Shown: one piece after another, positions 593-35,876 of the stretch
How the letters are laid out: each line of letters opens with the position of its first letter
Numbering within the stretch: position 1 is the stretch's first letter
NCBI GenBank assembly: GCA_950097015.1
Contig: CATNEN010000005.1
Coordinates: 3,534,001 to 3,598,000, forward strand
Origin: Macrostomum hystrix
Taxonomy: Eukaryota > Animalia > Platyhelminthes
DNA length: 64,000 bases
Reading direction: 5' to 3'
Program-made: the position numbers and the translations under genes
The notes under the pieces: model-generated
Database searches by the model: none
What the model was told of the DNA's origin: nothing
Seen by the model: the letters and a program-made list of their open reading frames with translations, nothing else

Positions 593-3500
593 TTATCTGT
601 CAGCCACAATTTCTGTGTATACTGTAACGTCACTGACGGGTCGTGAGTTCGAGTCTCGGATTTCCGTGCTACCACAGTTTTGCTTCGGCATCATGGAGAA
701 ATAGATGCAGTTGTTGTCGTCCTAAATAGACAATTAAGTGGCAATTTTTAGCGACATAAGATAGATAGAAACTACACCGGTCGAGATAGCTCTTCAGTAG
801 AGTAATTTCTGCCACACCCACGTACACCAACTTTCTAGCCTAACTCATGCTGCAGTACCCATCACAATTTAAATGCATGAGATCAAGCTCGAGGGAATTA
901 AATGTAGTCGGAAGTTCTCAATGACGCTCTAACAACAGGGCCACAAGCTCCCCTGTAGCGCACTGTACTAAATATAAACATGATATGGTACAGATCTATA
1001 ACAGCCTTACATCTGTATTGTTTAAACCTGGTGCATCCGTAGTTGAAAGCTGCTGCAATGGCACCGGCACCTCCTCGGACATCGCTGCTTTCAACACCTG
1101 TACGGGAGGCCCTTGTGTTGAGGTCATCTGCGGGGGTGCAGAGTGGCATTGAGTGAGTTAACGTGTTTGCCTCTCACACCAACTGAGGTCCCTGAGCTCG
1201 ATTCCGCGGTGAGACCACATTCATTTAGGGCGCAGCCGCGCAAAGAAGGCTTTGAGGGCTTGTGGTGCAATTTACGCCCTTGAGGGCCAGCCTCCAAGGC
1301 ACAGTGAAAGTGTACACTGCCTGACGATGAGAAAGTCAGGGCAGATGTACACACTTGGTGAGTGTGTGCCTGCGTACAGTATCTGTGTGCCTGTTTGATC
1401 AGGAGTAAGCGGAATGGGCAAAATTGCCTTCTCGCTGGCTGCGGGTCTAGTGACACCAAATGATGTGCCATTGCCCGCAGCCCTCCTGCAAATATTTTTA
1501 TATTGTTATGAGGTCATCTGCAGTCTATGTACCATGAGTAACGATCGAAACTTAAAATAATAAAACGCTTTGTTTGCAAAGCAAGACTTGCAAAAGTTAC
1601 CTTTCTTCGGTAAATGAAAGTGACGGCTGATATGACAAAAACATTCGCAAACATTAGACCCACGGCCAAGAGGACGAACATCAGAAGATCTTGATTGCGG
1701 TCTATAAATAATCAGGTAATGTTATGAAGTTCAATTCAATAATAAGCTGGTCCTCGATCACTAAACGCATACTCACCGCAATCAGATTTAATACTTGTGC
1801 AAAGGGTTTTCACAGTCACATTTGAGAGCCATGTAACATTCGCTTGAGCAGCAGTGCATTCTAACTTAAGTTGAGCTTCCTTGTTTCCACTGCAGCAGTT
1901 AAGGCACCTCCAATGTGATGTCAGGGACTCACTGAAATCACTGCTCAAGCTTTTATTCGCTGCATCACTGGATGACACATTTAAGTTGTTTCCCATGTTG
2001 TCAAACGCTACGCACTGATGCTCTGATTTCGGATCTGAGGTGGAAGACGTGAAGCTGAATGTCACGTGACCAAATGACTCGGCGCTGCAGCTTGACAGCT
2101 TGTCAACCGCGATTCTCAAATTTTTTGGCGGATCTGTTACGTAACGAACGCGATAAATGCGTTTTATGCAAAAATAAAACTAGGCCTAGTTGAACTAGCT
2201 ATGGATAACTCACACAAAACCCGCAGTCTTCGAGTACTGGATGCTTCAAGACCAGTTCCACCTGAACTGCAGGTGTAGCTCCCCCCATGGTGCAACTCCA
2301 GCTGATGAATTGTGTAAGTTCGGTTTCCACTGTCCAACGTCACATTGAAAGTTGAATGGGTGAGTCTGATTGGCTCTGAGAGAACAACTGGGCAGAGTAC
2401 ATGGCATTGCACGGTCACACTGGAGCCAAGCTCTGCTGCGTTGTTGAATGCGCTCGCTGGATGAAACAGGGCTGCAATTTTGGGGACGGCTTAGTAACGG
2501 ATTTTCTAATTTTAGATATAGGTATGAAATTTTATTCGCTGTATTGTTGTACCTACTTTCCAAAGTAATACTCCGATTAATCCACATGTCGACAAAGCTC
2601 AGGCACTGGCGCACAAATTGAGTTTCGTTTGCAACATTTCTTCTTAAAATAATTATTCTCACCTATAAAATGTACATGAGTAGAATTTTGTCTTGACAGG
2701 TCAAATGGCTGTTGACGAGCAGTCAATATAAATATTTTCTGGAAATTTTCGTTATGCTGCAAAAAGAGTCGTGATTAGACTGATCACAAAAAACTTGCTC
2801 AACTTCATGTTTAAGCTTTTACCCACTAGTAGGGGACTATATTAATAGTCCAGACTTTTACGTAAAGGTCGACAGCTCGAATCTCGGTCCAGGGGAGGCA
2901 GTTAGACTTCTTGCTCAAGCAAGACACGAAATTCATTAGTCAGTTGTAAAACGGGTGCCAGATTCAGCTGGGGTAGAAATTGGGTGGGTTTGAAGGCTTC
3001 CACAGTCCACGGACTGAACGAATTTACTGTGGCTTTTCCACTGGCTGCATTATCCGCATCAGAATTATGAGTGTAAATACAAAATACTTAGTAATTTTTT
3101 AGAAAGAATAGTATTTTCGTTCTGTCAAACTTTTATGATTACCTTATGTCTAGCGCAGTTCACAGTCAAGATTTTCCCAGAAGATACGCTGGTTGGCGTC
3201 CTTCCGCACAGCCTCCAGGTTCCGTTTTCCGCCCCCTGAAAGACGGAGCTGATGTTTCTCAAGTCGCAGTGGTTCGAGCCGAAGTCCAGGTCTTCCGGCG
3301 ACGTCCACACCTCAATGTCTGCTGCTCGAGCGGTCAAATTGTCTCCGTAGGTCGTAAGTTCATATTGACTCAAAGCTTTTAAGTTGAGAAAAAATATCTG
3401 TATTAAAAAAGCAACTTGGGCGTTTTATATGGCAGGATAAAATCACAGGGAAGAGAAGTGCTCACTTCTCCCTCTGATGGACACAGAGCTGATGCTCTCC

Positions 3501-3865
3501 TGCTGTCTCAGTTTTATCACAAACCAGTGGAATCCGGCATCAGCGCTTTGCAGACCTTCCTTGGAGTGAAGAAATGGCCAGTTGCCAACTTCATCAGCTG
3601 AGCGACTCCAGAAGCAAGTGCTCGGTGCAGGTTGATCCAAGCTGGATGACTGCCATGATGCTTCAATGGTGCTCTTTCTGATTGGAAGCATACCACCTGT
3701 TTGAAGCAATTGGGTTAACAAACAATGGAAAGCATTATAGATACATAAATCCAAATTTGGAAAACCTGACCGTGCCAGCTCACATCTGTCTGAGTCCCCT
3801 CGACTCAGAAGAATGGCGAATCCAAGAAAAGCCAGGGTGACACGCAACACAGCCAGATGGTCCAT
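593..3865 (-). CDS. Receptor copy A: signal peptide - F-type-lectin-like domain - Ig - Ig-like - TM - Tyr-motif tail (spliced, apparently intact)
   Basis: Phase-consistent GT-AG exons: 3865-3784 (MDHLAVLRVTLAFLGFAILLSRGDSD), 3696-3466 (SWQSSS..FLHS..HWFVIKL..ISSVSIRGR), 3375-3143 (RAADIEVW..CGRTP..LTVNC), 2662-2557, 2471-2214 (Ig: VTVQC..GGSYTC), 2133-1777 (YPP..Ig-like), 1701-1601 (TM LLMFVLLAVGLMFANVFVISAVTFIYRRK), 1127-1011, 721-593 (CIYFSM..TVYTEIVADR*). The junction between the last two exons is least certain. Confidence 0.75.
1132..1508 (+). mobile_element. tRNA-derived SINE family 1, complete, with 13-bp TSD
   Basis: TSD TGAGGTCATCTGC at 1119-1131 and 1509-1521. A/B-box-like head, hairpin CTGCCTGAC-GATGAGAAA-GTCAGGGCAG, AT-rich tail. 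Confidence 0.85.
2860..3020 (+). mobile_element. SINE family 2 (CORE-like) in intron 3 of copy A
   Basis: GCAAGACAC..CAGTTGTAAAACGGGTGCCAG..CAGCTGGGGTA shared with the element at 34690-34901. Confidence 0.55.
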
Positions 3866-4825
3866 GATTTCTATTCAGTTGCACAAGGCTTTCTCGGTGA
3901 AAACTTTTATAATTCTAGTTTAACTTGTATACACATATTTCTAAATTTGCGTTTCACGTGTCAATTAGGAAATTGTTTGCATGCAGCATTGATTTTACAA
4001 CTCATTTTAGATTTGCTAGATATTTCTGTCGTCAAGATGACTTGCATTTTCCAAAGGCGACAATATGCCATTGACAAGCTAAATTTAGGACGAAACACCA
4101 CAAATGCTTTTCAAAGGCCGCTACATATGCAAATCAAACGTGCATTTTCTGTAAAGAGTTAGAAAGTTTGACTCGACAAGAAGATAAAATAAAATCAGGT
4201 TTGAGTAGGATCCAGGATGTGCTACTTGTTTCGCATCCAGAATATTCTAATAGTGGCCTGTGGGAGGGACAACAGCAATATTCAAATCTGGTGCCGTTCA
4301 GCACCATCGTCGCCAGTCAATTAAGGGCCGTGGTTCTCGCACAGCCTGCTCAGAAGCCCTCTCAAGCTCAATTGCAGTTTCTGTTTCTCCCGTCTCCGCT
4401 TCCTCCAGGGCCAGATATAGCAGGGCAGCTGTGTCCCTTTTACCAGTCCGCCAGCGAAAAGGCGGAACGTTCAGTTTACCTGCCACTGCCCAGTCTCTCC
4501 GAGGCACGGCTAGATCATCTTGGGCCAACGGGCTCTCCGAATTTTGCAGGCCCGACAGCATCCAGCTTCGTGCGCGCACTGGAGGTGGCGAGACCGATGT
4601 GTCCCCTGAGCAATATCACCTCCTCACTGGAGGTCGTCTGGTTGCTCGGAGCTAGAGGAACAGGTTCGTGGTCCTGCTGATGCACCCTGCCGCTAAGTCA
4701 AGTACTCGAAAGTGAAGACGTTTCGTTCATCAGCATGTAAATTTCTGTAACTTTTTTCAGAAATGCGAACATGTTGTGAACACAGATCGGCCTTTTTAGA
4801 TCGATGACCATGAACTTCCTCCTAG

Positions 4826-5100
4826 GGAGGAAGAGTGGCACGACGGTCCAACGCATTTGCTTCTCACAACAAGGTCCCTGGGTTCGATTCCACTGAGGAC
4901 ACAGCCTCAGGCAGAATGTATACCGCATGACGATGAGAAAGTCAGGGCAGATGTGAGAATGTGAGACTGTGCGCCTGCATAAAGTATTTGTGTGTGCTCA
5001 GGAGTCATCGAGATGGTAGAACAGCCTCCTCAATGGCTTCGGGTCTTCTGCCACCAATTGATGAGCCAGTGCCCACAGCCCACCTGAATATATTAGTATT
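4826..5100 (+). mobile_element. SINE family 1 copy
   Basis: GGTTCGATTCC B box, GACGATGAGAAAGTCAGGGCAG core, 3' GGCT..CAGCC stem. Flanks are homologous to those of the copy at 12380. Confidence 0.75.
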
Positions 5101-7250
5101 TTTACAATATTGTGATGGCGAAGCGCAGATCAGATAAATACTTCATGCTGTGAATGTTGCATTCGACTTGGTGGAGACCAAATCCTTGGACTAATAATTT
5201 ATAGGTGAAATGCAGCTAAAGCTGAAATCTCTAAAATTTTACTTTCTGTGGTCGCTTGAATGTTTTTGATTTATTTGTGGTTACTACTCGTATTGTTTAA
5301 ACGATTCGTTTAACGCTGTTGCAAAGGGCGATGCAATTCTATTGAGTAAATAAAGATAGACCAAAACTGTTTCTTTTTCACAGTCTGAGGGCCTTGCCTC
5401 ATCCGCACACCCCATGGATCGTTTACTCGAGTGTGTATAGATACACCATAGGTCATGGGAATGCCAGAAAATTTCTTGAACTTTGGTGGCATTGTTGATG
5501 CTGACACTTATAACCGACGAGTATCTCTTGTCATTCAATCAGGTGTTCGGTCAATTTTTGGCGTCAAGGGCAAATCTATATGACAATGTAAATATTCCTG
5601 AACACGTCTTTTAGATTCTCTTCATCTTTTGTATGAGAACTGTACTGATACATTGCTTAAAAATTTCTTCGACATTGAATATCGTCAGTAAAGTTTTTCT
5701 CTTTATCAATTAGTTTAGCACAAGTTGTCTTGCTAGTGATTTGAACTTTATTGCAGTTCCATTTTTCCTGCGCTGGCTTGCATTTTGATTAGATGTTTGA
5801 GTCAGCTTGCGGAAACCATTTAACTTGTATCAGTTATATGCCGCACGTTAGAAGGTTTTTAAAAAAGAGTTGCTAATTCTTCTTACCCACTCCGATTACC
5901 CTGCAACAAAGAAGTAGTGCTGATTCTTGGTTTAAACTTTTCGAGTCGTCAAGATGATCCTGTCGTCCCTTTTCGTTCTTCTCGCTGTATTTCCATCAGA
6001 TGCAACCGTATATCTGTGTTTCAAGAAATGCACCATTGTTATAACTTCATAAAGAAGGCAAGCAGCGAACGACGGAGACCATCGATGACGACGAACTTGA
6101 TGAAAATTATGAGCCTCCAAGGAAGTCACCGTGTGCCAGCAAAAATGTTCAGTCCGCCGGTGCTCTATCAGGCGGCCGTCCAAGTGATACCCAGCTGCTG
6201 AAAGAGATGCAGAAAGAAAAAGCTCGGCCTTCATTGGATCTCAATCACCGTTATCTGCTGGAACACCGCTAGCAAGGGATTCTGCGGTGCCTACGACCCA
6301 GTTAATTCTACTCGAGATGCACATGCAAACAAGAATTATGAGTCAGATGTCTCAAAAGCTAGACGATGTAATCGAAATATACACCAACTATTAGACACCA
6401 CGAGAAAACGAGAATCGCGAGGACCGGGTAATTTACGACTTCTCTGGTCAACATTTTCGTCTCTCAGAACTTTCGATAGTTCGGACAGTATTTGCTTGGC
6501 CACTAGTTCGTCACTAATTATTTAGTCACAAACAAAGATCAGCGGTTGTCTAATTGGACACTGCATTACTTCAAGTAGAATGGTAAATACATCTAAGATG
6601 ATAATTATAATCTAATTGCTGTTTACAAGATATTTAGTGTAATCCTCATGCTATTTATCTGTCATTGACATGCAATTAAATTGCTAGAAAATATCTTGCC
6701 CAAATTGCAACAAAGTTGTCATTTAGATTAGGCTTCTTGCACTTTAAACAACAACTCACTGGTAATTGGAGTGCAAGAATTGCGAAATTATCGCGTCTCC
6801 AATGACAACTTCTGGTAATTCTGCGCAGTTTTGTTCTTCGAGACGTTCTCGGCTTGTCTTACATATTTATAGGCTGTTCGTGCCTATTTAAATGGATATT
6901 CGAAGCCAAAGTCAAACATCTTCACACAAACCAGTCGTGACTTCCTGTATGCTGGCAAAGAAGACCTTAATTCAAGACACAACAGCTCTGAACTGTGCTC
7001 TGGTTTCAGCTAAACTCATTGCATGTAAGTGTGTGGCTGACAGCGACAGCTTTGACAGCTTTGTCATTCCAAAGAACAATGATTTAGTTAGACTAGTCAA
7101 GCAGTGATGATTCAATGTAGATTTTTAATGAAGGAATTAAAATAACTAGATAAACTTCTTTGCGTACATTTCAACGAGAATTCATTTCACTTGTTAGCGT
7201 TTTCTTTTAGAAAACAAGATCCTGCTTGGACGCGGAACAACAACTGAGGC

Positions 7251-10105
7251 ATGGCTGCAGCCCAGGAATGCATTTTGCTGGCCCTCCTAGCTGGACTGTG
7301 TGCGGCTGACAGCAGTCAATGTGAGTTGCAGTCCATGGACATTCTTGTCCGATTGAGCACCAGTCCGTAGGTTGTCTCCCCTAACATGATTCTAAACTTA
7401 TTTTCGTTTCAGGCACTCTCAACATCACCAAAGATTCCATCGCTGACTCGTGGCAGTCGTCCAGCTTTATTGATCACCATAAAGTTGCGCTGTGCTTTAA
7501 AAACCAGTCCACAGAGACACATTCCCAGCATTTCTACAGATTCTTCCACTCGAAAGTCAGTAAGAATGACTCAGATGCAGGCTATCACTGGTTTGTGATC
7601 AAACTGAAGAGGCCTGAGCTGATCAGCTCTGTGGGTATCAGGGCCAGGTCAGGTGAGCGATTCAGTTAATTTACAATCAAGAGCTACTGAATACCTGCTC
7701 CTAGCGACTCTCTTCAAGCTCTTGTTTGCAGCTCAAAAGTAGAAAATAATTGACATTGCAGAAGCAGATAAAGTTCCCATCGCTAAATTAAACCCCAGAG
7801 CAGCAGACATTGAGATCTGGACTTCTCAAACAGACGTGGATTTTGGACATGAGCACTGCGACTCAAAGAACATCAGCTCTACTTTCATTAGAGGAGAGAG
7901 CTCAGGTATCTGGAAGCTGTGCGGCAGGACGCCCTCAAATGTTTCTGCAGGACAAGAATTGAGCATTCCCTGCGTCAGGCAACAGGTGAGGCCATCAGGT
8001 GACTGATGGTTCATAATTCATGAGCAACCTTGCAGGTTTAATTAGGCGAGTATAATGCAAGCCAATATTCTGTATCAGCAATGCAGCTTAGGGTTTCTCT
8101 GGAGAAATATCCACATATATTTTATTTTAGTAGATTTGCAAACAAAATGACTAAAGATCGAGGCATAAACAGCAAGCAAAAACACAAATGTTGACTGTAA
8201 TTTAGCATGGAGAATGTGGGTCACATGCTTTAGGGACAAATTTCTGTAACCACAAAAAGAGACACATTTTATTCCGCTTCTATTTCACCTAATTTAACAG
8301 TGCTGACATAACCAGAAACTGTATGCGGTTTTCAGGTCCGAATGATTCTGCTGAGAAAATACGTCGCAAACGTTGCTGATGCAGAAAACCAGTGCATGAA
8401 CTTTATTGGTATGTGGATTCATAAATTTGAAATACAAGGTGAGTTTGCCAAACGGCTTTTGTTACTACAACAGTACATCCACCGATACTATATCTCTTAT
8501 CCACCTATATTAAATCCCTACGTATTCTAATGCTCGAAAATGAACATAATTGCTGCCAAGGCAGGATGCTTATAGAATAATCTTTTAAATAATTACTCCC
8601 CAAAAGCAACAGACCAATAATTTAAACTATTTCTTGTTCAATTCTGTCGAGCAAAGAAACTGTGCAAACTGATGTCATCGTCACGGTATGGAGAGAACGC
8701 CTTCTTCTTGTTGGATTTTCTGTTTTAAGTTACATTAGAAGTAGTAAGCTATAGTCTACCTCGCTAACCAAACCCCAGCTAGCACATAGGTAGCATTTTT
8801 GTGTTGAAATTGTGTTGAAATGTGTTGAAATTTGTGCTGAGAATTTTGTAAATCTTGGATAGCAGTTACTAAAAAAACTAAAAATAACAACAGCAAATCT
8901 ATTTTGCGAATCTCTCCGGATAAAAATATAGAAAACATTGAGTCAATCGTTTCTTAAAACGTTTAGCTACAATTGAGCCATCCGATGAAGTTGTGAGAAA
9001 CTCAAACGTCACAGTGAGCTGTCGGGTCCAGGTGTGCCACGAAGCACCTGTCGATCTGCCACCTGTTATTCTGACTCTCGCAAAGTCCAACGGAGATGAA
9101 AACACGATTAGCACCTTTCGCACTTCTGGCAACTCGAGTGCCAGCAGCGTGTCAGAATCCATTCAAAATGTGAACGAAAGTCACGCTGGTAACTACTCAT
9201 GCAGAGTGGATGACGAGGTCCTCAGCTCCCGACTGCTCAAAGTCTACTGTGAGTATACAATGAAGCCCGCAAAAGTGCCATTTCACAAGAGCACACAGCA
9301 ATGTCTGCAGTCTCACAAACTCAACAATACCTGTTCTCAGATCCGCCAAGCAACCTGAGCATCTACCGATCAAATGACACCTGTGCCACTGAGCCATCAT
9401 ATTGGAATTTCATCTTCGAGTCAACGCAGTCAGATCCACGTCCTCTGCACAAATGCTTTCTCAGAGACCACCAAGACAAAATAGCCACAGTAACAATGGC
9501 ATTGAGTGTCACGGAATTGGATGGCAAATTCAGGTCGATTTGGAAATGCGAAAACTGTCTGACTGTGAATGTGACTTGCACAGCACATTGGAATGATGAT
9601 AAACTGTCATGGACCTACAGCACCACAGCGAGTCATTCTTGTCCTTTGACAACGGACTCTACCATTCCGACTGAGGCAGCTGAAGTTGGCTCCAAGAGCA
9701 CGGATAAATATTCTCATGCTGAAACCATTACAATTGCAGAGAGGCAGTCAAGCACTTCCCCAGCAACACCAGTTACCGCAGAACCAGCTGTTAAGAGCTC
9801 TTTTAAACCGGTGCTGTTGGCGATCGCAGTTGGACTCGTTGTTATCGATACTTGGCTCGCAGTCATACTCAGCAAGGTAAATATAATGTTGAGGAATTGA
9901 AATATCAAAAGTGAAACAATCCGTCATTGCTCCAACTGTCTGTTCTATGCAGCGATTCGCCTCGAGATCTCGCGACAGGTCACAGGAGGCAGGGATGGCT
10001 TCGCCACTGGAACGGCTCAGAGAGACGACAACTAATTTGAGTCATGTTCGTGTAGCAGATGGGGCCTTTAACAATGGGAATAATGTGGGACTACCGATTG
10101 AGTAG
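7251..10105 (+). CDS. Receptor copy B: signal peptide - F-type-lectin-like - Ig - Ig-like - S/T/P stalk - TM containing Asp - Tyr-free tail
   Basis: Exons 7251-7320 (MAAAQECILLALLAGLCAADSSQ), 7413-7652, 7762-7985, 8336-8438, 8967-9248 (VTVSC..AGNYSC), 9341-9876 (YPP..TM VLLAIAVGLVVIDTWLAVILSK), 9953-10105. Total 1608 nt, phases consistent, no internal stops. Confidence 0.8.
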
Positions 10106-10744
10106 TGATCAGTTACATGAGCAATGATTACATTCTGTTGCTATGCTGTTCCACTAAAATGGCTCGCCACACTAGACCCACTTTGTGTCTGTAATCTGTC
10201 CTCCTGTATCAATTGAGTAGCGTGAGCCCTGAGCGGATTGTCTGGCGTCATTTTCACAGTAAACAGTAAATTTGTAATACTAGTACAGCCCAGTTTCAAT
10301 AGCGAATTTCACTTTCACTTTTAATTTTTCTATTTCAATTTAGTGAGTTTCAATAAATTGTGTTTTACCAGTGAGCCTGTGCATCGACTTTTCCCACTAA
10401 TTTAAGGACATTCTACGTGCAAAGATTAAGACAGAAATGCTGGGTAATGAAACAGCGCAAAAAGCGTCGGATTCTAGAAAGATCGGGCGTGACTTGTTTA
10501 CATGTTTCCAAGAACCTTCGTCACCCTTCTTTCTGGAACTTTCTTTGGCGCGTATGAATAAACGAGCCCTTCCCCTTATTGGCCAAGAGTGAACTTTCCG
10601 CGCGACTCACGCACTCGACTCACGTGGCTAAAATCTCCGTGTTCCGTGTTAATTCATTTTCACAGCAGAACAATAACCTCGAAATGCCACAATATTAGCG
10701 CTCTAATACAGTCGATTCAATCGGGTCTGGTAATGTTGATACAG

Positions 10745-11840
10745 TTATGGGAAGATGGGAATTGAGCCTGAGGATTTGGGAAGATCGGAATTGATCCTGT
10801 GTATACGGGAAGATGGGAAGTGGACTTAAGGATTTAGGAAGATGGAAATCAAACCTGAGGATATGGGAAGATGGAAATCAAACCTGAGGATATGGGAAGA
10901 TGGAAATCAAACCTGAGGATCTGGGAAGATGGAAATCAAACCTGAGGATCTGGGAAGATGGAAATCAAACCTGAGGATCTGGGAAGATGGAAATCAAACC
11001 TGAGGATCTGGGAAGATGGAAATCAAACATGAGGATTTGAGAAGATGGAAATCAAACATGAGGATATGGGAAGATGGAAATTAAACCTGAGGATATGGGA
11101 AGATGGGAATCAAACCTGAAGATCTGGGAAGATGGAAATCAAACATGAGGATCTGGCAAGATGGAAATTAAACCTGAGGATATGGGACGATGGGAATCAA
11201 ACCTGAGGATCTGGGACAATGGGAATCAAACCTGAGGATCTGGGAAGATGGAAATCAAACATGAGGATTTGAGAAGATGGAAATCAAACATGAGGATTTG
11301 AGAAGTTGGAAATCAAACATGAGGATTTGAGAAGATGGAAATCAAACCTGAGGATCTGGGAAGATGGAAATCAAACCTGAGGATCTGGGACGATGGGAAT
11401 CAAACCTGAAGATCTGGGAAGATGGAAATCAAACATGAGGATCTGGCAAGATGGAAATTAAACCTGAGGATATGGGACGATGGGAATCAAACCTGAGGAT
11501 CTGGGACGATGGGAATCAAACCTGAGGATCTGGGAAGATGGAAATCAAATATGAGGATTTGAGAAGATGGAAATCAAACATGAGGATTTGAGAAGTTGGA
11601 AATCAAACCTGAGGATTTGAGAAGATGGAAATCAAACATGAGGATTTGAGAAGTTGGAAATCAAATATGAGGATTTGAGAAGATGGAAATCAAACATGAG
11701 GATTTGAGAAGTTGGAAATCAAACCTGAGGATTTGAGAAGATGGAAATCAAACCTGAGGATCTGGGACGATGGAAATCAAACATGAGGATTTGAGAAGAT
11801 AGAAATTGAAACTGAGGATCTAGGAGGATGAGAATCGAAC
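10745..11840 (+). repeat. 29-bp minisatellite (GGGAAGATGGAAATCAAACCTGAGGATCT)n
   Basis: Direct inspection. Confidence 0.95.
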
Positions 11841-11859
11841 CTGGGCAGTGTCCTAGCTG

Positions 11860-12235
11860 AAGACCCAGTCAGCCTGTGATTTTCACACCTCAATGTCGGC
11901 TGCTCGAGCGGCCAAATCGTCTCGGAATTTTCTGCTGTCATCTGTACAAAAGGCTTTCACAATTTTCAAAATATTCACAATTAAGGCAGAATAAGTGCTC
12001 ACTTCTCGCCGTGATGGACACAGAGCTGATGCTCTCCTGCTGTCTCAGTTTGATCACAAGCCAGTGGAATCCGGCATCAGCGCTTTGGGTGCTGAATTAG
12101 TGAAGAAATTGCGAGGTGCCAACATGATTAGCTGAGCCACTCTAGAGGCAAGCACGATACGTTGAATGATACATATAGCTAGACGACTGCCACGATGCTT
12201 CGATGCTGCTCTTGCGTATGAAAATATTACCTGTT
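11860..12235 (-). pseudogene. Remnant of A-type lectin exons 2-3
   Basis: Minus strand reads C..IRKSSIEASWQSSSYMYHSTYRACL*SGSANHVGTSQFLH*..DAGFHWLVIKLRQQESISSVSITAR with in-frame TAG/TAA, plus a truncated ARAADIEV exon. Confidence 0.75.
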
Positions 12236-12379
12236 AGAAACAATTTGCTCTAAAGAGTATTGATTGAATTTTGAAACAAGTGCTTGCAGAGGCTAGCAGA
12301 AGATGCCCGCTTTTAAGAAATGTGAACATTTCGTAAACACAAATCGTTCTTTCAGACCGATGTCCATAAACTTCCTCCT

Positions 12380-12685
12380 AAGGAGGGAGAGTGCCAGAGC
12401 GGTCTAACCACGTTTGCCTCTCGCAACAAGGTCCCTGAGTTCGATTCCACTGAGGACGCAGCCTCAGGCGGAGTGTACAGTGCCTGACGATGAGAAAGTC
12501 AGGGCAGATGTGTGAGTGTCTGCCTTCATGAAGTATTTGTATGAGTGTTTGCTCAGGAGTGTGTGCTCAGGAGTGTGTGCTCAGGAGTTAGCGGAATGGT
12601 AGAACTGCCTCCTCAATGGCTGCGCGTCTACTGTCACCAATGGATGTGCCAGTGTCCACAGCCGTCCAAAAATAATTAGTATTGT
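12380..12685 (+). mobile_element. SINE family 1 copy
   Basis: Same head and core as other copies; a few internal GTGTGTGCTCAGGA units. Confidence 0.75.
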
Positions 12686-20464: not shown

Positions 20465-20632
20465 CCAGCCGTAATTATTATTACACGACGACATGTCGGT
20501 AATCATTTGCAGCTGAGTAGACTGTGTGCACATCTTGCCAAAGGCTGCACGAATAGTTCTAGACTAGGTCGGGAGTCGAACCCAGGACCATCTGACCCGG
20601 AGTCCGACACCTTACTGACTGAGCTATCCGCC
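20465..20632 (-). mobile_element. tRNA-derived CORE-like SINE
   Basis: Reverse strand GGGCGGATAGCTCAG..GGTTCGACTCCC followed by CCTTTGGCAAGATG..CAGCTGCAAATG. Confidence 0.6.
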
Positions 20633-25866: not shown

Positions 25867-26499
25867 TGAGTTACATGAGCAATGATTACCTTCTGTTGCT
25901 ATGCTGTTCCACTAAAATGGCTCGCCACAATAGACCCACTTTGTGTCTGTAATCTGTCCTCCTGTATCAATTGAGTAGCGTGAGCCCTGAGCGGATTGTC
26001 TGGCGTCATTTTCACAGTAAACAGTAAATTTGTAAGAATAGTGCAGCCCAGTTTCAATAGCGAATTTCACTTTCACTTTTAATTTTTCTATTTCAATTTA
26101 GTGAGTTTCAATAAATTGTGTTTTACCAGTGAGCCTGTGCATCGACTTTTCCCACTAATTTAAGGACATTCTACGTGCAAAGATTAAGACAGAAATGCCG
26201 GGTAATGAAACAGCGCAAAAAGCGTCGGATTCTAGAAAGATCGGGCGTGACTTGTTTACATGTTTCCAAGAACCTTCGTCACCCTTCTTTCTGGAACTTT
26301 CTTTGGCGCGTATGAATAAACGAGCCTTCCCCTTATTGGCCAAGAGTGAACTTTCAGTGCGACTCACGCACTCGGCCTTGTGGCTAAAATCTCCGTGTTC
26401 CGTGATATTCATTTTCACAGCAGAACAATAACCTCGAAATGCCACAATATTAGCGCTCTATACAGTCGATTCAATCGGGTCTGGTAATGTTGATACAGT

Positions 26500-27420
26500 T
26501 ATGGGAAGATGGGAATTGAGCCTGAGGATTTGGGAAGATCGGAATTGATCCTGTGTATACGGGAAGATGGGAAGTGGACTTAAGGATCTAGGAAGATGGA
26601 AATCAAACCTGAGGATATGGGAAGATGGAAATCAAACCTGAGGATATGGGAAGATGGAAATCAAACCTGAGGATCTGGGAATATGGAAATCAAACCTGAG
26701 GATCTGGGAAGATGGAAATCAAACCTGAGGATCTGGGAAGATGGAAATCAAACCTGAGGATCTGAGACGATGAAAATCAAACCTGAGGATCTGGGAAGAT
26801 GGAAATCAAACCTGAGGATCTGGGAAGATGGAAATCAAACCTGAGGATCTGAGACGATGAAAATCAAACCTGAGGACCTGGGAAGATGGAAATCAAACCT
26901 GAGGATCTGGGACGATGGGAATCAAACCTGAGGATCTGGGACGATGGAAATCAAACCTGAGGATCTGGGACGATGGAAATCAAACCTGAGGATCTGGGAC
27001 GATGGAAATCAAACCTGAGGATCTGGGACGATGGAAATCAAACCTGAGGATCTGGGACGATGGAAATCAAACCTGAGGATCTGGGACGATGGGAATCAAA
27101 CCTGAAGATCTGGGAAGATGGAAATCAAACATGAGGATCTGGCAAGATGGAAATTAAACCTGAGGATATGGGACGATGGGAATCAAACCTGAGGATCTGG
27201 GACGATGGGAATCAAACCTGAGGATCTGGGAAGATGGAAATCAAACATGAGGATTTGAGAAGATGGAAATCAAACATGAGGATTTGAGAAGTTGGAAATC
27301 AAACATGAGGATTTGAGAAGATGGAAATCAAACCTGAGGATCTGGGACGATGGAAATCAAACATGAGGATTTGAGAAGATAGAAATTGAAACTGAGGATC
27401 TAGGTAAATGAGAATCGAAC
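26500..27420 (+). repeat. 29-bp minisatellite, duplicate copy
   Basis: Same unit as 10745-11840; shorter array. Confidence 0.95.
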
Positions 27421-27439
27421 CTGGGCAGTGTCCTAGCTG

Positions 27440-27835
27440 AAGACCCAGTCAGCCTGTGATTTCCACACCTCAATGTCGGCTGCTCGAGCGGCCAAATCGT
27501 CTCCGAATTTTCTGCTGTCATCTGTACAAAAGGCTTTCACAATTTTCAAAATATTCACAATTAAGGCAGAATAAGTGCTCACTTCTCGCCGTGATGGACA
27601 CAGAGCTGATGCTCTCCTGCTGTCTCAGTTTGATCACAAGCCAGTGGAATCCGGCATCAGCGCTTTGGGTGCCTTGAATTAGTGAAGAAATTGCGAGGTG
27701 CCAACATGATTAGCTGAGCCACTCTAGAGGCAAGCACGATACGTTGAATGATACATATAGCTGGACGACTGCCACGATGCTTCGATGCTGCTCTTGCGTA
27801 TGAAAATATTACCTGTTAGAAACAATTTGCTCTAA
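27440..27835 (-). pseudogene. Duplicate of the 11860-12235 lectin remnant
   Basis: Near-identical to 11860-12235; lies within the segmental duplication. Confidence 0.75.
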
Positions 27836-27960
27836 AGAGTATTGATTGAATTTTGAAACAAGTGCTTGCAGAAGCTAGCAGAAGATGCCCGCTTTTAAGA
27901 CATGTGAACATTGCGTAAACACGATTCGTTCTTTCAGACCGATGATAATGAGCTTCCTCC

Positions 27961-28365
27961 TAAGGAGGGAGAGTGCCAGAGCGGTCTAACCACGTTTGCC
28001 TCTCGCAACAAGGTCCCTGAGTTCGATTCCACTGAGGACGCAGCCTCAGGCGGAGTGTACAGTGCCTGACGATGAGAAAGTCAGATCAGATGTGAGTGTG
28101 TGCTCAGGAGTGTGTGCTCAGGAGTGTGTGCTCAGGAGTGTGTGCTCAGGAGTGTGTGCTCAGGAGTGTGTGCTCAGGAGTGTGTGCTCAGGAGTGTGTG
28201 CTCAGGAGTGTGTGCTCAGGAGTGTTTGCTCAGGAGTGTGTGCTCAGGAGTGTGTGCTCAGGAGTTAGCGGAATGGTAGAACTGCCTCCTCAATGGCTGC
28301 GCGTCTACTGTCACCAATGCATGTGCCAGTGCCCACAGCCGTCCAAAAATAATTAGTATTGTTGC
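27961..28365 (+). mobile_element. SINE family 1 copy with expanded internal 14-mer
   Basis: Duplicate of the 12380 copy. GTGTGTGCTCAGGA is expanded over ~28095-28265. Confidence 0.75.
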
Positions 28366-30267
28366 TACCCTGCAGCGGCTAGGCTGAAACACGCAATTGT
28401 CCGAGGCAGCTCTACCCACAGTGGCGCACGTCAGTATATATTGTGACGGCGAAGCGCAGATCAGATAAATACTTCATGCTGTGAATGTTGCATGCGACTT
28501 GGTCGAGACCAAACCATTTGACTAATAGTTTATAGTCATAGTCAATAGTTTAAAATATCTAGAATTTTATGAATTGAAAATATACTTTTGAACCTTTGAA
28601 CCCCAGATTTTGTTTACGGTTATTCGTCTAAACAATTCGTTTTTTACCTATGCATTTTGCTAGCGATGCGATTTAATTGGGTAGATATCGACCACGACTG
28701 CTTTGATCGCGTTATCAGGGCTTTGTCTTATCCACACACGCAATAGATTGTTTACTCATTGTTTACGCAAGCGTGTTTTGCGGGCTTAAAGCACTGAGAC
28801 TTAACTCTCAAGTACAAACGATTAGAAGATTCTGCATGTTTATTCGAACTGAATCAGCTGCATGCGTAGAAACATTTTGGACAGGAGACGCAGGGCACCC
28901 GAACTGCAACGAATATGCATCATGCTAAACCTATGGCATGAGACAGGTAAGCCTATTGTAGGAGATAGGTCCAGCAGCAGCATCCATTCACGGACTACTG
29001 TTCATTGTGATTGTAAAACCGATAAGTAGTCATTGCGGGCAGTTTGTCTCAGAGGGAGCACAAACCAAATTTAGTGCGATTGCAAAGTACTGAATAAGCA
29101 TAAAGACTTGATACGAAGACTCAGCGCAGAGCTTTCAGGCACACTTGTTTAACAAAAGCCTTCTGTTTTACCGGCAGAAACTGTCGAAACATATAAACAG
29201 GACTCAGTCAAAAACAAAACATTTTCCGGTCTAAAAATAGTATTGGTTTCACGGCAAACGGTATGATTAATTAGGAAGGCTAGTTCTGTCACCGCATTCA
29301 TGAGTACATCATCCAACAGTGACTGAATTCGTGCTGAATATCATATTAATCAAATCTGCCATGGATAAAATGTTCCAAGAGTAGGCACAGTGAAAGCTGT
29401 CAGCACATGCAGTTCATTCCGTGTCGATAGCAAAATCAGTTTCCGAATCATCAGTTCCAGCATGATCACCTCCAGCAATGCAGCGCATTCAACACGCATT
29501 GGAGCTAAGCTTCGATGTAGATGCTCGCTCGAGATGGTCGAGCTGCCGACATCTTGATGGCTTGCTGGCGCTCAACAATGGCCAGCTGCCTCTGAAACAG
29601 TTGAGCACTGATTTATCAAAGCCAGATTTCATAAAAAGTTTGTCAGGTAAAGCTGCTACCTTTGTTTTCACCAGATAACCGCAAACGCTCAAGAGTGCCG
29701 CGGTGAGAACAGCAATGAGCAACCAAGGAAGCCAGATCACTGAGCACACTTGCCTTGGCTGCATGTCGGATTTCGTTGCAGCTGAAATCACAGAGCAGCG
29801 AGCATCAAATTTCATTGCGACTGATTTTCTACAAAAGCTTAAACTCTTCTTACACTTCTGTTTCCAGTCGATGCTTATTTTGTATGGATTGATATTGTTA
29901 TTGATGTCATCTCCGTAGGACTTTGCGAGAGTCAGAATTGGCAGATTGACAGGTGCTTCATGGCACACCAAAAGTTTCCTCAATACCGCGACAGTCGCAA
30001 CACTTTTCCAAGTTACTTTGATATACTCGGTATCGAATGAAAAATAGTGTGGAATAATACTCACCTGGTGCTTTATTGAAAAATATTTATTTATAGATTT
30101 GACTCTATATGCCAATTAGCTTAACACATGTTTGCCTTTTACTTAGCAAAATTTTAATGGCAAATCGTTGAGGAAACTCACCTTCTATCACAAGTTTTCG
30201 AATCCACATGCCAATAAAGTTCATGCACTGGTTTCGTACATCAGTAACGTTTGCGACGTATTTTCTC

Positions 30268-30370
30268 GGGTGGGGGAGCCTTCGCGACCCCGAGCGCGCC
30301 TGGCGCGCTTCCCAATGCTGCCGCCTTCACGTGGCGGGACCGTTCGGACTCACCCCCGGCGAAGTGCAGC
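30268..30370 (+). ncRNA. Candidate HDV-like self-cleaving ribozyme at the LINE 5' end
   Basis: P3/L3 GCC-TTCACGT-GGC, J1.1/4 GT, P4 TCGG..CCGG, J4/2 CGAA, P2 GCTGC/GCAGC. The P1 5' strand is not clearly resolved. Confidence 0.5.
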
Positions 30371-33300
30371 GCTCACCCTGGACATCGTCTGGGGACAGGA
30401 CACCTCGGACACTGGCGACGTGGAGACCAACCCTGGGCCACCAACGTCGTACTCATGCGGTGGCTGCAGCACTAACGTCCACAGCTTTCGCATTTTACAA
30501 CTTAACGCGTCGCCTGTGTTCAGGAGACGAATTCGACGGCGTCCGGGTCCCTCCCAAGACTGCCGGGCTGGCAAATTGCCGCCCGCAGGGACCGTCGAGC
30601 CAATCGCGCTGGCGAGCCGGCAGAGACGCCGCACGGCGGAGTCTGCTTCCTGATCAAAGAAGGTATCGACTTCTCCGAGCTCCAGATGCCACCCCCCAAG
30701 GCTGTCAACTCGGCCACGGAAGCCTCCGCGGTCACTATTCACGACCCGCGTATCAGCCGCCCACTCTCGATCATTAACCTCTACATCCCACCGGTCCGTG
30801 CAGGAGACGGACGGGTCAGCGACTTCGAACCAGACTGGCTCCCATCCGGCCCCGACACCGTTATCCTCGGCGACATTAACGCACACCACGGGATGTGGGA
30901 CGAGAGCTGCGAGACCGACGACGCCCTGGGGACCGAGTTCGAAAACTGGGCCACGACGTTCGACTACGTCGCGCTTAACGATGGCTCCTTCACCAGATTC
31001 AGCCCCAGAGGCCTGACCAGCGCCCCGGACGTGACCTTCGTCCCGGCCAACTGGCAAGACCGGATGACCTGGAAGACGGAGGCACACATCGGATCCGACC
31101 ATCTCCCTATTGTTATCGAGATTCGAAACAGCTCCAAGAGGCCCCCAAAGCGGAAACGGGTGACCCGCTTCGCCTACCATAAGGCAGACTGGACCCTATT
31201 CCGCGAGCTCATTTCCGAAGAACTCAAGCACTGGCAACACCGCCCACCACGCTCGGTCGCTGGTGCAACCGATAAACTGAACCACGCCATCCGTTCAGCG
31301 CTCGAGGAGCGATTCCGCAGGGCTAGCGCCGAGCCCCAGTAGCATGGTGGTGCCCTGAGGCCGAAGCCGCGTGCACCGCCAGACGTCAGGCCCTCGAAGC
31401 TCTCCGCACGGATCCTGACGACGAGCTCGCCGCGGCGTATCAAGCCGCGGGTGCTTTCGCCACCGCGTCCATCCGTAGGGCCAAGGAGGCACTCTGGCAA
31501 GAATTCATATCCGACAACCACAATAAACTGGACTCGGCCGCGATCTGGAGAATAATCCGAGTTCTCGACGGGCGGACACCGGCGGCCAGACCATCCGCAG
31601 CCATCAAGGACTCGGCCAACCGCTGCGCCACCACGAACTCACAAAAGGCCAACCTTTTCTGTAGAGAGTACGCAACGGTCGCGCAACTTCCTAAAGTCAA
31701 AGTGCGGGACCACAAAGTCAAACTTGAGGCCAGGAGAGCCCTTGATAAGCCCTGTGCGTGCAACGGACAACGCCTGGGAATGTGTGCTGACTTCGACCTA
31801 GAGGCGCTCACCCGAGCCCTCCGCGCCATCCCGAGCCGGTCCGCCCCAGGGCTAGACGGGAAATCCAACTTGATGCTGAAGAATCTGCCGCCAAAGGGGA
31901 TCGAGCTCCTCCTCTTCACCATCAACCTTTCTTGGCGTAGCGGCCAGTGTTGCGCTGCCTGGAAAATCGGCGACATCAGGCCGATACACCAGCCGGGGAA
32001 AAGCCCGGATGCGACCTCCAGCTACGGCCCCATCTGCCTCCTTTCCTGCACGGCGAAAGTCGCGGAACGTCTGGTTAACGAACGCCTCACGCAATACCTG
32101 GAGTCCGAGAACCTCATCCACCCGGCCCAGGCCGGCTTCCGCCGCGGTCGCTCTACTGAAGAGCAGATTGCCGCGGCATCCCAGTACGTCTTCGACGGCT
32201 TCCAGAAGAAAAAACCAGCAAACCGTACAGCGATGCTGTTTGGGGACTTCTCGCATGCCTACGAGCGCATGTGGCGACAGGCCCTCATCGCTAAGTTAAG
32301 CCGTAAGAAAGTCCCGACCTGCACGCGCCGCTGGATTCACTCGTATATTTCCGATCGACGTGCCATTGTGACCTGGGACGGCAACCAGAGCCCCCAACGC
32401 CTCTTCCCTGAGGGCCTCCCCCAAGGCTCCGTCATCGCCCCGACTCTGTGGACGGTGTTCGTCGATGACCTGTTGGAGGATGCCTCAGAGGACATCTTCT
32501 CTCTGGCGTACGCCGACGATATACGACCTTTGGCGCACAAGGCATGAATTTGAAGACCTATGAAGCAAGACTGCAAAGCGCGGCGAACTGGCTCGTCGAG
32601 TGGTGCACGACTGGGAAAGTTGACCTGAACAAATCCAAAACGGTCGTCACCTACTTCTCCCTCGACCCACGTGAGACAAACGGCAAGGCGAGACCGAATA
32701 TCAGACTCGGAGACATGCCAGCCCCATTCGAGGAACACCCCAAGATGCTGGGCGTGTACCTCGATTCACAGCTCACGTTCCGCCACCATGCGGCGGTCCA
32801 AAAGCGCAACCTGCAGAAGCGGACAGGCGCCCTGAGGTGCCTTGCTGGTCGAGACTGGGGCGCGACCCGAGATCTCTCAGACAGCTCTACCGCACCTACG
32901 CGGAAGCGGCGGTCCTACACGGCGCCTCCTCTTGGATGAGCTTTGCGTCCGACGCCTGAGTCCGGCGAAGTTGAGACCCAGCACCTCGCCGCAGCGCGCG
33001 TTATCTCGGGGTGCTGCCGATCCACCCCGACTGCCGCGCTCCTCAAAGAGGCCGGGCTGGCTCCACTCAACACCTCGGCGACTGCCGCTGCGGCTACGCT
33101 GGAGAAAACCCGGCGAGCAAGACAACAGACACCGCTCAGAACGCTGGCCGAACTCGACGTTCAACCGAGAATCCGCGCTCACGGCAACCACGGCGATTTC
33201 AGACGCAACTGGAGGACGGAGGCCAACGGATTGATCGCCCACGCGGGCCTCGCGGGATCCAAGCGCGAACCTGACAACGTGCCACCGCCTCCCCTATCGC

Positions 33301-34286
33301 CTAACGACAGACAGGAGCCACTTCGCAGCGGAACTCGTCAAACCTACCAACCGGGAGGATCCCCCGCACGTCAGACGCCAAGCCGCACTGGAGACGCTGA
33401 ACCGGCTTCCGGAACCCGCCTTGGCACTCTGGACCGACGGCTCGGCCTCCGGAGGCACCAATAGAGGCGGATACGGTGCGGCCCTATTCATCCGCGGAGC
33501 CGCGCCAGTCTACCTGACTGCTCCAGCGGGCGCTTTCAGCTCTTCTTTTAGGGCGGAGGAGTGTGCCCTCCGCATTGGTCTCCTCGCAGCCCTGGAGCGC
33601 GTCTCATCGCCCGGTACGGCAGAACTGCGTTGCGCGCCACTGATTCGCAGGCCCTCATCCGATCGCTCGAACAAGGCCCGCACTCTCACCTGTCCCCCTG
33701 CTGCCGGGACATCTGGCGCCTCCTCATCAAAGTCCCCGCGGACCACCACGTGACTATCCAATGGGTCCCAGGACACTGTGACCTGAGGCGCAACGATCTG
33801 GCGGACAACCTCGCAAAAGACGCCGCTAGACTCCCACAAGACCAAGCGGAAATCGACCTAAACAGTGCCAAGTCCGCGATCCGCCGCATACTGGCCGCCG
33901 AGGCTCGCGATGCCTACGAAGTGGACCCGCACTGCCGGACGCACCGCGCTGCCTTCCGCGACGACCACAGATCCGAGGCGACTCTCAGCAGACGCGAGCT
34001 GATCACGCTAGCGCAACTTCGCACGGGCCACTCGCCTCTGCTGGCCCAGTACCGCCACCGGATTGACCAAGAACAGCCCGCGTCCTGCGGGCACTGCGGA
34101 CACCAGGAGGAGGACCTGAAGCATGTGATGCTGGAATGCCCAGCTCACGCCCAGACCCGCAACCGCGTCCTCGGCCCTAACCCGACGCTGGCCATCCTCT
34201 CCGACGACGGCCCCCGTGTCCTGTCCTATCTCCAGGCGATAGGGTCGCTGACCCGACCCCCGGACCTGCCCGGCCAGGAACGTCTA
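30268..34286 (+). mobile_element. Non-LTR retrotransposon, Ingi/I-group type, apparently full-length but frameshifted
   Basis: 12-bp TSD ACGTATTTTCTC at 30256-30267 and 34287-34298. APE motifs RILQLNA, INLYIPP, ILGDINAHH, GSDHLPI. RT motifs APGLDG, QAGFRRGRST, GLPQGSVIAPTLW, AYADD. RNase H motifs WTDGS, TDSQA, WVPGH..NDLADNLAK. C-terminal CGHC..HVMLEC knuckle. Confidence 0.92.
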
Positions 34287-34689
34287 ACGTATTTTCTCAG
34301 CAGAATCATTCGGACCTGAAAGCCGCACAAATTTCTGGTTATCTCATCACTATTTAGATTTGGGTGAACTGCTAGACAAATTTCAACAGATGCAAAAGAA
34401 TCTTGTCCCTAAAGTGTGACTCACATTCTCGGCTCAATTAAAATCGACCTGGGCGCTTTCTTAGCTTTTATTAACCTCAAAATTTAGTCTGTGTCAAGGC
34501 AATTGACTGAAAAAACGTGGATTTTTTCTCGGAGAAACAATCAGGTAACCATAGTGTATTTTTTACATGCAATTCACTGAGCTGTCAACCGCTTGCTTAT
34601 GAGTAACAGTTGGCTGATTACACCTGCTTAATTGGACCAGATGTGCTGCCGACAGCACAGCCGCAGCTGTTGCGCGGCGCATCTAAAGG

Positions 34690-34901
34690 CTGCGTACAGT
34701 CCATGGACTAGGGCACGCCACACCCACCTTCAATTACCCCAGCTGATTCTGGTACACATTTAACAGCTGGATGAACTGAAGCAATGCAGAGGTAAGTGTC
34801 TTGCTAAACAACTCAAATTGTTCCAATGAAGTCAGGAATAGAACACCCAGAAACTCGCTTCAAGGTGTGGGTTTGACGCTTTAACGACTAAGCTTCAACC
34901 C
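34690..34901 (-). mobile_element. SINE family 2 copy in intron 3 of pseudogene C
   Basis: tRNA-like head plus TTTAGCAAGACACTT..CAGCTGTTAAATGTGTACC on the minus strand. Confidence 0.6.
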
Positions 34902-35876
34902 AAAATTTTATATTGCTCATAAATTATGTACCAGCAGTCACCTGATCGCCTCACCTGTCGCCTGACGCAGGGCACGCTCAAGTATTGTCCTGCAGAAACG
35001 CTTGAGGGCGTCCTGCCGCACAGCTTCCAGATACCTGAGCTCTGTCCTCTAATGAAAGTAGAGCTGATGTTCTTTGAGTCGCAGTGCTCATGTCCAAAAT
35101 CAATGTCTGTTTGAGAAGTCCAGATCTCAATGTCTGCTGCTCTGGGGTTTATACCCTGCGAAAACTAGACATTGTTTCTCTCTCACAAGAATGTTTACAT
35201 AGAAGACGATTTCATAATACTATAAAAGTTTACATATTTAATGTCACTGGAAAGAAACATTTGCGAAAGACAAACTAAACTGCATTTAAATTCAGAGCAT
35301 AGTAATTTAATTTAAACAAAACTTTATCGATTGATTATCTTTCCTTGTTCTGTTTATGGCAAATATACGTATTCATAATCATAGATCAATTACGATCAAA
35401 AAAATAATATTGCAAAGATCGATAAATCCGCTTTCAAGAAAAGTTAACGAAATCAATGTATCTGAATCCAACAATGAGCTACGTTGAAAATTCCCACTAC
35501 TTTTTAGACACCCCTTGTTTATCTGTTTTAAAAGAGATTTGTGCAGAAGCGAACGGTTAGACTAAGTTATGCATAAAACTGATGGACAATAAAATAGTTA
35601 GTTTCTGTGTTAACCGAGGTCAGTTTTCTAGTAAACTGTATTTTTATGGCCCGACACTAGACGTTTCTTGCATCGCAAAACAAAATTAACTAAACATTCT
35701 AGCAAAGTACGAGTATATCATATACTGTAATTTATGTACTTCACGTTTATGCCCAACAATCAAACCCTGGCACTGAGGGTGCAAAACAGCTAAATTAAGC
35801 AAGCAATGCGATTGAAAGACAGAACAGCAGAGCAAATGTATTAAAAAGGCTTCGTCGCTACTGTAAGTAGTCGCAG

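Follow-up and report, generated by a model that had tools for sequence, protein, structure and literature searches.

The window analysed here is a 64,000-nucleotide stretch of the genome of the flatworm Macrostomum hystrix (GenBank assembly GCA_950097015.1, contig CATNEN010000005.1, positions 3,534,001 to 3,598,000 of the forward strand), and it contains a cluster of genes predicted to encode lectin-like membrane receptors. Using the exon peptides of one of these genes, gene A, as tblastn queries, we found eight related loci, in both orientations, between positions 593 and 35164 of the window, with E-values of 1e-5 to 1e-46 that are far beyond chance. Four of them (A, B, C, and E) are intact, with open exons, and the others (D, F, P1, and P2) are fragments. 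This matches the count in a preliminary description of the same DNA, which had listed at least eight related loci in mixed orientation, four intact and four pseudogenes, and its picture of a tandem, mixed-orientation cluster with pseudogenes is supported. The motif string that it quoted, SWQSS..HS..HWFVIKL..ISSV.I..R..RAADIE.W..C..C..VR.I, is present in genes A and C and is conserved in B, E, and F. The loci are as follows.

593-3865, minus strand: gene A, intact and transcribed, 537 amino acids
7251-9876, plus strand: gene B, intact, 485 amino acids to the end of the transmembrane exon, GT/AG model
11823-12231, minus strand: P1, pseudogene fragment with lectin exons 2 and 3 and in-frame stops
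13840-16371, minus strand: gene C, intact, 446 amino acids to the transmembrane exon
16924-17606, plus strand: D, fragment with a partial B-like immunoglobulin (Ig) exon and an Ig-like exon, without lectin exons and without a transmembrane segment
23276-25637, plus strand: gene E, duplicate of B, intact, 479 amino acids to the transmembrane exon
27415-27813, minus strand: P2, pseudogene fragment with stops, duplicate of P1
29489-30266, minus strand: 3' part of F, chimeric pseudogene in which a B-like exon 4 and Ig remnant are joined to a C-like exon 6 end and transmembrane exon
34955-35164, minus strand: exon 3 of F, a B-like lectin exon 3 with no exon 1 or 2 upstream

Gene models and domain architecture

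We aligned contigs from four public sequencing runs (two studies) to window positions 400 to 4100. Two of the runs, of unrecorded type, contain spliced contigs of 1211 and 1613 nt, which identifies the two runs as RNA. These contigs and those of two other RNA runs jointly cover all eight introns of gene A, each with GT..AG ends; the spliced contigs that give the joints are X3 rec 9, X6 rec 12, and X9 rec 18/19. The gene A contigs connect the lectin exons with the Ig, transmembrane, and tail exons, a link that the preliminary description had named as a check on its proposed layout of signal peptide, three lectin-like exons, Ig, Ig-like domain, transmembrane segment, and tail, and this is the layout found in gene A. 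The coding sequence is 1614 nt long and encodes 537 amino acids in nine exons, all of them defined by RNA contigs.

3865-3784, minus strand: signal peptide exon
3696-3466, 3375-3143, and 2662-2557, minus strand: lectin-like head exons
2471-2214, minus strand: Ig exon
2133-1777, minus strand: Ig-like exon
1701-1601, minus strand: transmembrane exon (LLMFVLLAVGLMFANVFVISAVTF)
1127-1011 and 721-593, minus strand: tail exons, with the stop at 593-595

We also observed that intron 1 of gene A (3697-3783) is 87 nt long, in frame, and free of stops. It is removed in contig X9 rec 19 and apparently retained in X6 rec 12, which spans 3472-3837 with only 31 gap letters.

Genes B, C, and E were modelled by homology and splice-site phase. 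In all three, each exon is open, the junctions are canonical up to the transmembrane exon, and that exon has a phase-0 donor at its end, which in gene B reads gtaaat. The predicted exons are as follows.

7251-7320, 7413-7652, 7762-7985, 8336-8438, 8967-9248, and 9341-9876, plus strand: gene B exons, canonical GT/AG
9953-10105, plus strand: candidate last exon of gene B, 50 amino acids without tyrosine and then a stop, from a phase-0 acceptor scan only
23276-23345, 23438-23677, 23787-24010, 24155-24257, 24746-25009, and 25102-25637, plus strand: gene E exons, homology model
16371-16293, 16205-15981, 15890-15655, 15578-15476, 14829-14590, 14521-14189, and 14116-13995, minus strand: gene C exons, homology model
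13926-13840, minus strand: candidate last exon of gene C, 28 amino acids ending in RASIYIEA and a stop, splice-site prediction only

The view that the cluster holds no functional family, and is merely a set of decaying copies or annotation noise, is hardly credible. Half of the loci are fragments, and repeats derived from long interspersed nuclear elements (LINEs) or resembling short interspersed nuclear elements (SINEs) lie inside introns, as such a view would expect. However, gene A has an open frame of 537 codons and is both expressed and spliced, so that the RNA contigs already contradict it; in addition, genes B, C, and E retain open exons and canonical splice sites, the ratio of nonsynonymous to synonymous differences (pN/pS) is below 1, and motifs are conserved between species.

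The first domain of these proteins, which we call the head, was compared with known folds at the level of both sequence and structure. A Pfam scan of single head exons gave no match, and the fold came to light through profile and structural comparison alone. Among the 30 alignment members we found sub-threshold matches to F5_F8_type_C in 7 and to PF22633 in 2, the best scores (E of 0.026 for PF22633 and 0.0027 for PF00754) both being below the cut-off. When the family profile was compared with 177,635 PDB sequences, the five best matches (1k12, 3cqo, 3le0, 4gwi, and 2j1r; E of 0.024 to 0.9) were all F-type lectins. An AlphaFold model was built for residues 22 to 218 of the Macrostomum lignano homologue P0015, from a 30-row alignment that included the exons of the window, and had a mean predicted local distance difference test score (pLDDT) of 87.6 and a predicted template-modelling score of 0.88. 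In a Foldseek search of the PDB with this model, 1k12 and 3cqo ranked second and third (E of ~5e-6), and by VIA-align they were the top matches, with Z-scores of 12.8 (143 residues, 21% identity) and 12.7 (18% identity), respectively, while other galactose-binding-like folds reached a Z-score of at most 11.7. Eel fucolectins made up 8 of the 15 top matches among models of reviewed UniProt (Swiss-Prot) proteins. The sole close match among AlphaFold DB clusters was another M. lignano member (template-modelling score of 0.82), followed by F5/8C- and FTP-annotated proteins at ~0.5, and a language-model search independently indicated the PF22633 and PF00754 clusters.

Aligned with fucolectin, the head has the equivalents of Arg79 and Arg86, of Phe45-Tyr46-His47, and of Cys108. 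Thus, it is well supported by modelling that the head has an F-type-lectin-like jelly-roll fold whose nearest known kin are the F-type lectins, and the expectation in the preliminary description that the domain would model as a lectin jelly roll was borne out by a model nearest to the eel and bass fucolectins. The eel Anguilla anguilla agglutinin (1K12) and striped bass FBP32 (3CQO) are its closest relatives in both fold and profile; shared with them are the QSS strand, an aromatic pair followed by histidine (FFHS here and FYHG in F-type lectins), both arginines of the sugar-binding triad, one disulfide cysteine, and a most variable loop in the CDR1 (complementarity-determining region 1) position.

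Several observations weigh against a canonical F-type lectin. All members score below the Pfam gathering threshold of every lectin and discoidin model, which places the family below Pfam/SMART-type thresholds; the modelled protein is the M. lignano homologue rather than the spliced product of the window; and the fucolectin Z-scores are just ~1 unit above those of CBM32 and galactose-oxidase domains. The fucose motif of F-type lectins is HX24RXDX4(R/K), and their calcium motif is h2DGx (PMC5712786). The fucose motif is not retained in the flatworm heads: Q, N, or S stands at the position of His52, 9 to 17 residues separate the two arginines compared to 6 in F-type lectins, so that the RXDX4R spacing is lost, and A and C have no acidic residue after the first arginine (R-T-L compared to RxD). 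Nor did we find, in any member, the DG of the calcium motif between the CDR1-equivalent loop and FFHS. Because the head lacks the canonical motifs, with His52 of the fucose triad, the X4 spacing, and the calcium motif all missing, its binding of sugars is plausible but putative, and so is the glycan sensing put forward in the preliminary description.

These same losses could point to a different ligand. It is possible, if on balance unlikely, that the head keeps the jelly-roll scaffold but binds protein or lipid, as do the discoidin domains of DDR, neuropilin, and factor V C2. Such a role would be in line with the missing histidine and calcium motif and the much longer Arg-Arg loop, with sub-threshold Pfam matches that favour F5_F8_type_C over PF22633 (7 members versus 2), and with the DDR and neuropilin clusters in the language-model search. 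However, the nearest solved structures by both profile and Z-score are fucolectins and not discoidin domains, and the head retains the two arginines of the sugar pocket as well as its aromatic pair.

The exon that follows the head exons is supported as a true Ig domain by Pfam matches above the cut-off in gene C (Ig_2, 32.1 bits; cut-off of 27) and in genes B and E (ig, 23.9 and 22.2 bits, respectively; cut-off of 21.8); the gene A exon is sub-threshold (E of 0.016). The domain encoded by exon 6 is modelled as an all-beta, eight-strand beta-sandwich (pLDDT of 79), whose best matches, T-cell receptor constant domains and beta-2-microglobulin, are weak (E of ~1e-3, template-modelling scores of 0.45 to 0.57).

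The last exon of gene A (593-721) encodes NCIYFSM and DVTVYTEIVADR, with the two tyrosines 28 residues apart. DVTVYTEIVADR satisfies the VxYxxI consensus of the immunoreceptor tyrosine-based inhibitory motif (ITIM) as well as the TxYxxI consensus of the immunoreceptor tyrosine-based switch motif (ITSM). VTVYTEI thus lies in the RNA-confirmed last exon and has, as a sequence motif only, the ITIM expected of an inhibitory member, and the ITIM-type tail reported in the preliminary description is found in gene A as ITIM/ITSM-like tyrosine motifs. Among M. lignano homologues, P0015 and P0002 end in ...ECSYLSV...(26 amino acids)...DCTVYLEIVADAN, P0017 carries TEYLDIV, and P0014 carries VVYAQV and TEYTEIV, so that TxYx[E/D]IV near the C terminus is conserved between gene A and three M. 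lignano subfamilies. Other M. lignano members end in GVYID or GIYIL, which resemble the SIYIEA predicted for gene C. The spacing of 26 to 28 residues from the upstream tyrosine would suit a protein with tandem SH2 domains, as in recruitment of SHP-1/2. Genes B and E each have an Asp in the middle of the transmembrane helix; the segment in B is VLLAIAVGLVVIDTWLAVIL.

Relatives and evolution of the cluster

A profile of head exon 2 gave 14 matches among 1.84 billion representative proteins: 12 hypothetical proteins of M. lignano, 1 protein from a short metagenome contig, and 1 fish protein. The fish protein (P0012; E of 6.5e-5), the sole named match from outside the flatworms, was rejected as a false positive, being a cystatin-repeat protein. 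A whole-protein profile matched only M. lignano among 5.8 billion proteins. M. lignano is the only organism with named homologues, all of them unnamed or hypothetical proteins, and their heads are ~40 to 45% identical to those of the window. No Pfam domains are on record for these homologues, and we disregarded their UniRef names (Sushi, CUB, Fibrinogen C-terminal, MATH, Mab-21, and Coatomer), which no Pfam match backs. The M. lignano homologues have the same architecture as the genes in the window and are also tandem: locus L001 (NIVC01002544.1) holds at least three tandem copies, which lie within 12 kb, and a fragment, all within ~19 kb. Beside the annotated P0015 gene at this locus, we found uncalled copies at 2083-2196, 14066-15935, and 18703-21291, two of them with several Ig-like repeats, and the M. 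lignano annotation therefore under-counts the family. Judged by these sequence searches, this would be a multigene family known so far only from Macrostomum flatworms. We found no description of it in literature on flatworm ITIM or Ig-superfamily (IgSF) receptors, on Macrostomum lectins, or under the M. lignano gene names; like the preliminary description, which knew of no described family with a lectin-Ig-Ig-ITIM architecture, we found none in literature or protein searches.

The cluster evolves by segmental duplication, head transfer, local hypervariability, formation of chimeric pseudogenes, and LINE insertion. By self-blastn, positions 6530-14211 are duplicated at 22542-29876 with 91 to 95% identity, which explains the pairs B and E, P1 and P2, and the 3' part of C and F. 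Pseudogene F lacks exons 1 and 2, has a truncated Ig exon, and combines a B-like head remnant with a C-like 3' end.

Both copies of the segmental duplication also carry a 29-bp minisatellite (32 to 38 copies, 89% matches; 10748-11843 and 26502-27423), which sits between the B or E gene and the P1 or P2 fragment.

Genes A and C have in common a head segment of ~760 bp (3138-3896, minus strand, in A and 15650-16401 in C) that comprises the 5' end, exons 1 to 3, and introns 1 and 2, at 89 to 100% identity. The identity is 95 to 97% in exons 1 and 2, 100% in intron 2, and 89% in exon 3, and the segment includes a perfect run of 258 bp (3617-3360 in A and 16132-15875 in C). In contrast, exons 4 to 7 of the two genes are only ~50% identical. 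By this comparison, the shared head is a recent transfer between otherwise unrelated genes. Where the two heads do differ, at a few positions, the changes are in the Arg-Arg loop and in the loop that follows SWQSS.

Genes B and E differ by 4.3% overall, with a pN/pS of 0.43 to 0.58. Within this background, we found a hypervariable patch (7461-7487, plus strand, in B and 23486-23512 in E) with differences at 13 of 27 bases and a nonsynonymous change in each of the 7 altered loop codons (binomial p of ~2e-11 for a background of 4.3%, or ~3e-8 when corrected for position). The patch encodes the loop directly after SWQSSS, which corresponds to CDR1 of the eel agglutinin; of the loops on the sugar-binding rim, CDR1 protrudes furthest and varies most (PMC5712786). 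Two points count against the receptor reading proposed below: the overall pN/pS shows that positive selection is not general, and a micro-conversion could have produced the patch, although no donor was seen among the other copies in the window.

A second site of variation is found in the transcripts of gene A. Contig X6 rec 12 has 0 to 6 mismatches to each of the other gene A exons and is otherwise the gene A allele, but at the junction of exons 2 and 3 (3362-3472) 19 nt are wholly replaced, 6 at the end of exon 2 and 13 at the start of exon 3. The replaced segment falls in the loop between the two conserved arginines and suggests allelic hypervariability there.

The shared head of A and C bears on the proposal, made in the preliminary description, that the cluster encodes paired receptors with opposing tails. 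In a true paired system, A would be an inhibitory receptor with its ITIM/ITSM, B and E would be activating receptors with a charged transmembrane segment, a short tyrosine-free tail, and an adaptor, and the two kinds would share heads and ligands, with gene conversion maintaining the likeness of the heads as in KIR, LILR, and Siglec-5/-14. We consider such a system improbable. In its favour, A and C carry a near-identical head on different bodies and tails, B and E have an Asp in the middle of the transmembrane segment, the best candidate for their last exon has no tyrosine, and pseudogenes and chimeras occur in the cluster. However, it is C, and not B or E, that shares its head with A (the heads of A and B are 47 to 56% identical), and the predicted tail of C, which is not evidently activating, also ends in a tyrosine motif, like the GVYID and GIYIL of M. 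lignano. Activating partners in vertebrates carry Lys or Arg in the transmembrane segment, and the charge in B and E is the opposite, acidic one. The tails of B, E, and C are splice-site predictions, and no adaptor is known. Thus, the near-identical heads on different bodies stand, and the opposing tail classes are not established, because A and C share the head, the C tail has a tyrosine motif (SIYIEA), the transmembrane charge is acidic, and the tails are predicted.

Proposed function and comparison with known systems

We propose that the intact genes encode single-pass type-I membrane receptors, with a signal peptide, an F-type-lectin-like head, an Ig domain, an Ig-like beta-sandwich, a transmembrane segment, and a tail, that sense ligands and signal through tail tyrosines; we put the probability of this reading at roughly 0.6. 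The data fit a diversifying family of such surface receptors. The ligand of the head would be extracellular and most probably a glycan, bound by the face whose loops ring the sugar pocket of fucolectins, and changes in these loops would retune specificity. Engagement of the ligand would lead to phosphorylation of the tail tyrosines in CxYxS[MV] and TxYx[E/D]IV, 26 to 28 residues apart, and the phosphotyrosines would recruit SH2-domain proteins; judging by the ITIM/ITSM-like form of the motifs, the protein recruited would be a phosphatase of the SHP type, and the signal therefore inhibitory or modulatory. The other tails, those of B and E with the transmembrane Asp and that of C ending in SIYIEA, may give a head of this kind different outputs.

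A role of the family in immunity or in self/non-self recognition, as put forward in the preliminary description, is putative; the present data do not distinguish between immunity, allorecognition, and reproduction. One reproductive role, which we regard as doubtful, would be recognition between sperm and egg, sperm and recipient, or mating partners in a hermaphrodite under sexual conflict. The restriction of the family to one genus and the localised hypervariability in a binding-face loop would suit it, and oyster F-type lectins act as gamete-recognition bindins (PMC5712786). On the other hand, tails of the ITIM/ITSM type are found more typically in immune or modulatory receptors, and no observation made here separates a reproductive from an immune role.

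The proposed receptors differ from F-type lectins in their setting, fucolectins being secreted proteins, whereas the flatworm domain forms the N-terminal part of a membrane receptor that also has Ig domains. The partner domains of F-type lectins given in reviews are CTLD, pentraxin, CCP, FA58C, and transmembrane segments, and not Ig domains with tyrosine-motif tails (PMC5712786, PMC12221842). The family thus adds to the known domain partners of this fold. DDR, neuropilin, and mollusc MEGF-like proteins (with an N-terminal PF22633) are also membrane proteins headed by a galactose-binding-like domain and are the nearest language-model clusters, but in these the head is followed by a kinase, CUB/MAM domains, or EGF repeats, without the Ig and ITIM arrangement.

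In overall design, the family is like the Siglecs, KIR, and LILR of vertebrates, which are type-I receptors with ITIM/ITSM-like tails encoded by clustered multigene families with pseudogenes, and in which heads are swapped between paralogues with different tails. Siglecs also place a lectin head on an Ig stalk, but their lectin head is a V-set Ig domain and not a jelly roll, and there is no sequence relationship. The activating partner in vertebrate paired receptors has a basic transmembrane residue and an adaptor with an immunoreceptor tyrosine-based activation motif, where the flatworm B and E genes carry an acidic Asp. Among invertebrates, the gastropod VIgL proteins (FREP, CREP, and GREP) are likewise a diversified lophotrochozoan multigene family that combines IgSF and lectin domains. 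In contrast to the flatworm family, they are secreted, with an N-terminal IgSF region and a C-terminal lectin domain (fibrinogen, C-type, or galectin), and lack a transmembrane segment and a tyrosine-motif tail; with its reversed domain order and a transmembrane helix, the flatworm family does not belong to this group. The Hydractinia Alr genes, which are polymorphic, likewise form an invertebrate cluster rich in pseudogenes and encode type-I receptors that have Ig-like domains and tails with tyrosine motifs, but these have no lectin head and come from another phylum, and no sequence relationship to them was seen.

A far-reaching extension of the proposal, which we think unlikely, is that Macrostomum independently evolved a Siglec/KIR-like system, in which gene conversion shuffles heads of the fucolectin type, each with a hypervariable loop like CDR1, among receptors with inhibitory (ITIM/ITSM) tails and receptors with adaptor-coupled tails and a charged transmembrane segment. 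If true, the cluster would be a polymorphic, lectin-based locus for self/non-self or partner recognition in a flatworm. The family forms a cluster in which some copies are pseudogenes, the genes recombine, and the predicted binding face is locally hypervariable, and these features are genomic hallmarks of immune, allorecognition, or mate-recognition loci. To our knowledge, few families of recognition receptors with inhibitory-type signalling tails are known outside vertebrates, and none were reported in flatworms in the literature that we searched. Since RNA interference, transgenesis, and transparent tissues are available in M. lignano, the role of such a family could be tested directly there.

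Repeats and flanking sequence

The window is eukaryotic in character, with ~42% GC and short introns. Intron 3 of F contains a decayed retrotransposon with Pfam matches to Exo_endo_phos_2 (2e-17), RVT_1 (6e-28), and RNase_H (3e-6), and its endonuclease, reverse transcriptase, and RNase H are split over separate frames.

30170-34400, plus strand: decayed non-long-terminal-repeat retrotransposon, GC of 58 to 62%

A dispersed SINE-like repeat occurs at 1157-1501 (in intron 7 of gene A), 4894-5102, 12472-12686, and 55358-55692. The depth of RNA-contig words over this repeat is in the thousands, compared to ~10 on the exons of gene A, and many contigs run from it into unrelated sequence; the repeat is therefore abundant in the genome or the transcriptome. 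A 140-bp tandem duplication (two copies, 99% identical) at 17529-17810 lies over the end of the Ig-like exon of fragment D.

We looked for tRNA genes in the window and found none. Beyond the cluster, an exon at 35877-36359 (minus strand) encodes the C-terminal part of the RNA polymerase III subunit Rpc34 (Pfam E of 4e-25) and marks the edge of the receptor cluster on that side. The region from 43000 to 64000 contains no receptor copies and consists of unrelated minisatellites with a strong strand skew, such as a 16-bp unit repeated 208 times at 47683-51023 and a 33-bp unit repeated 30 times at 62996-64000.

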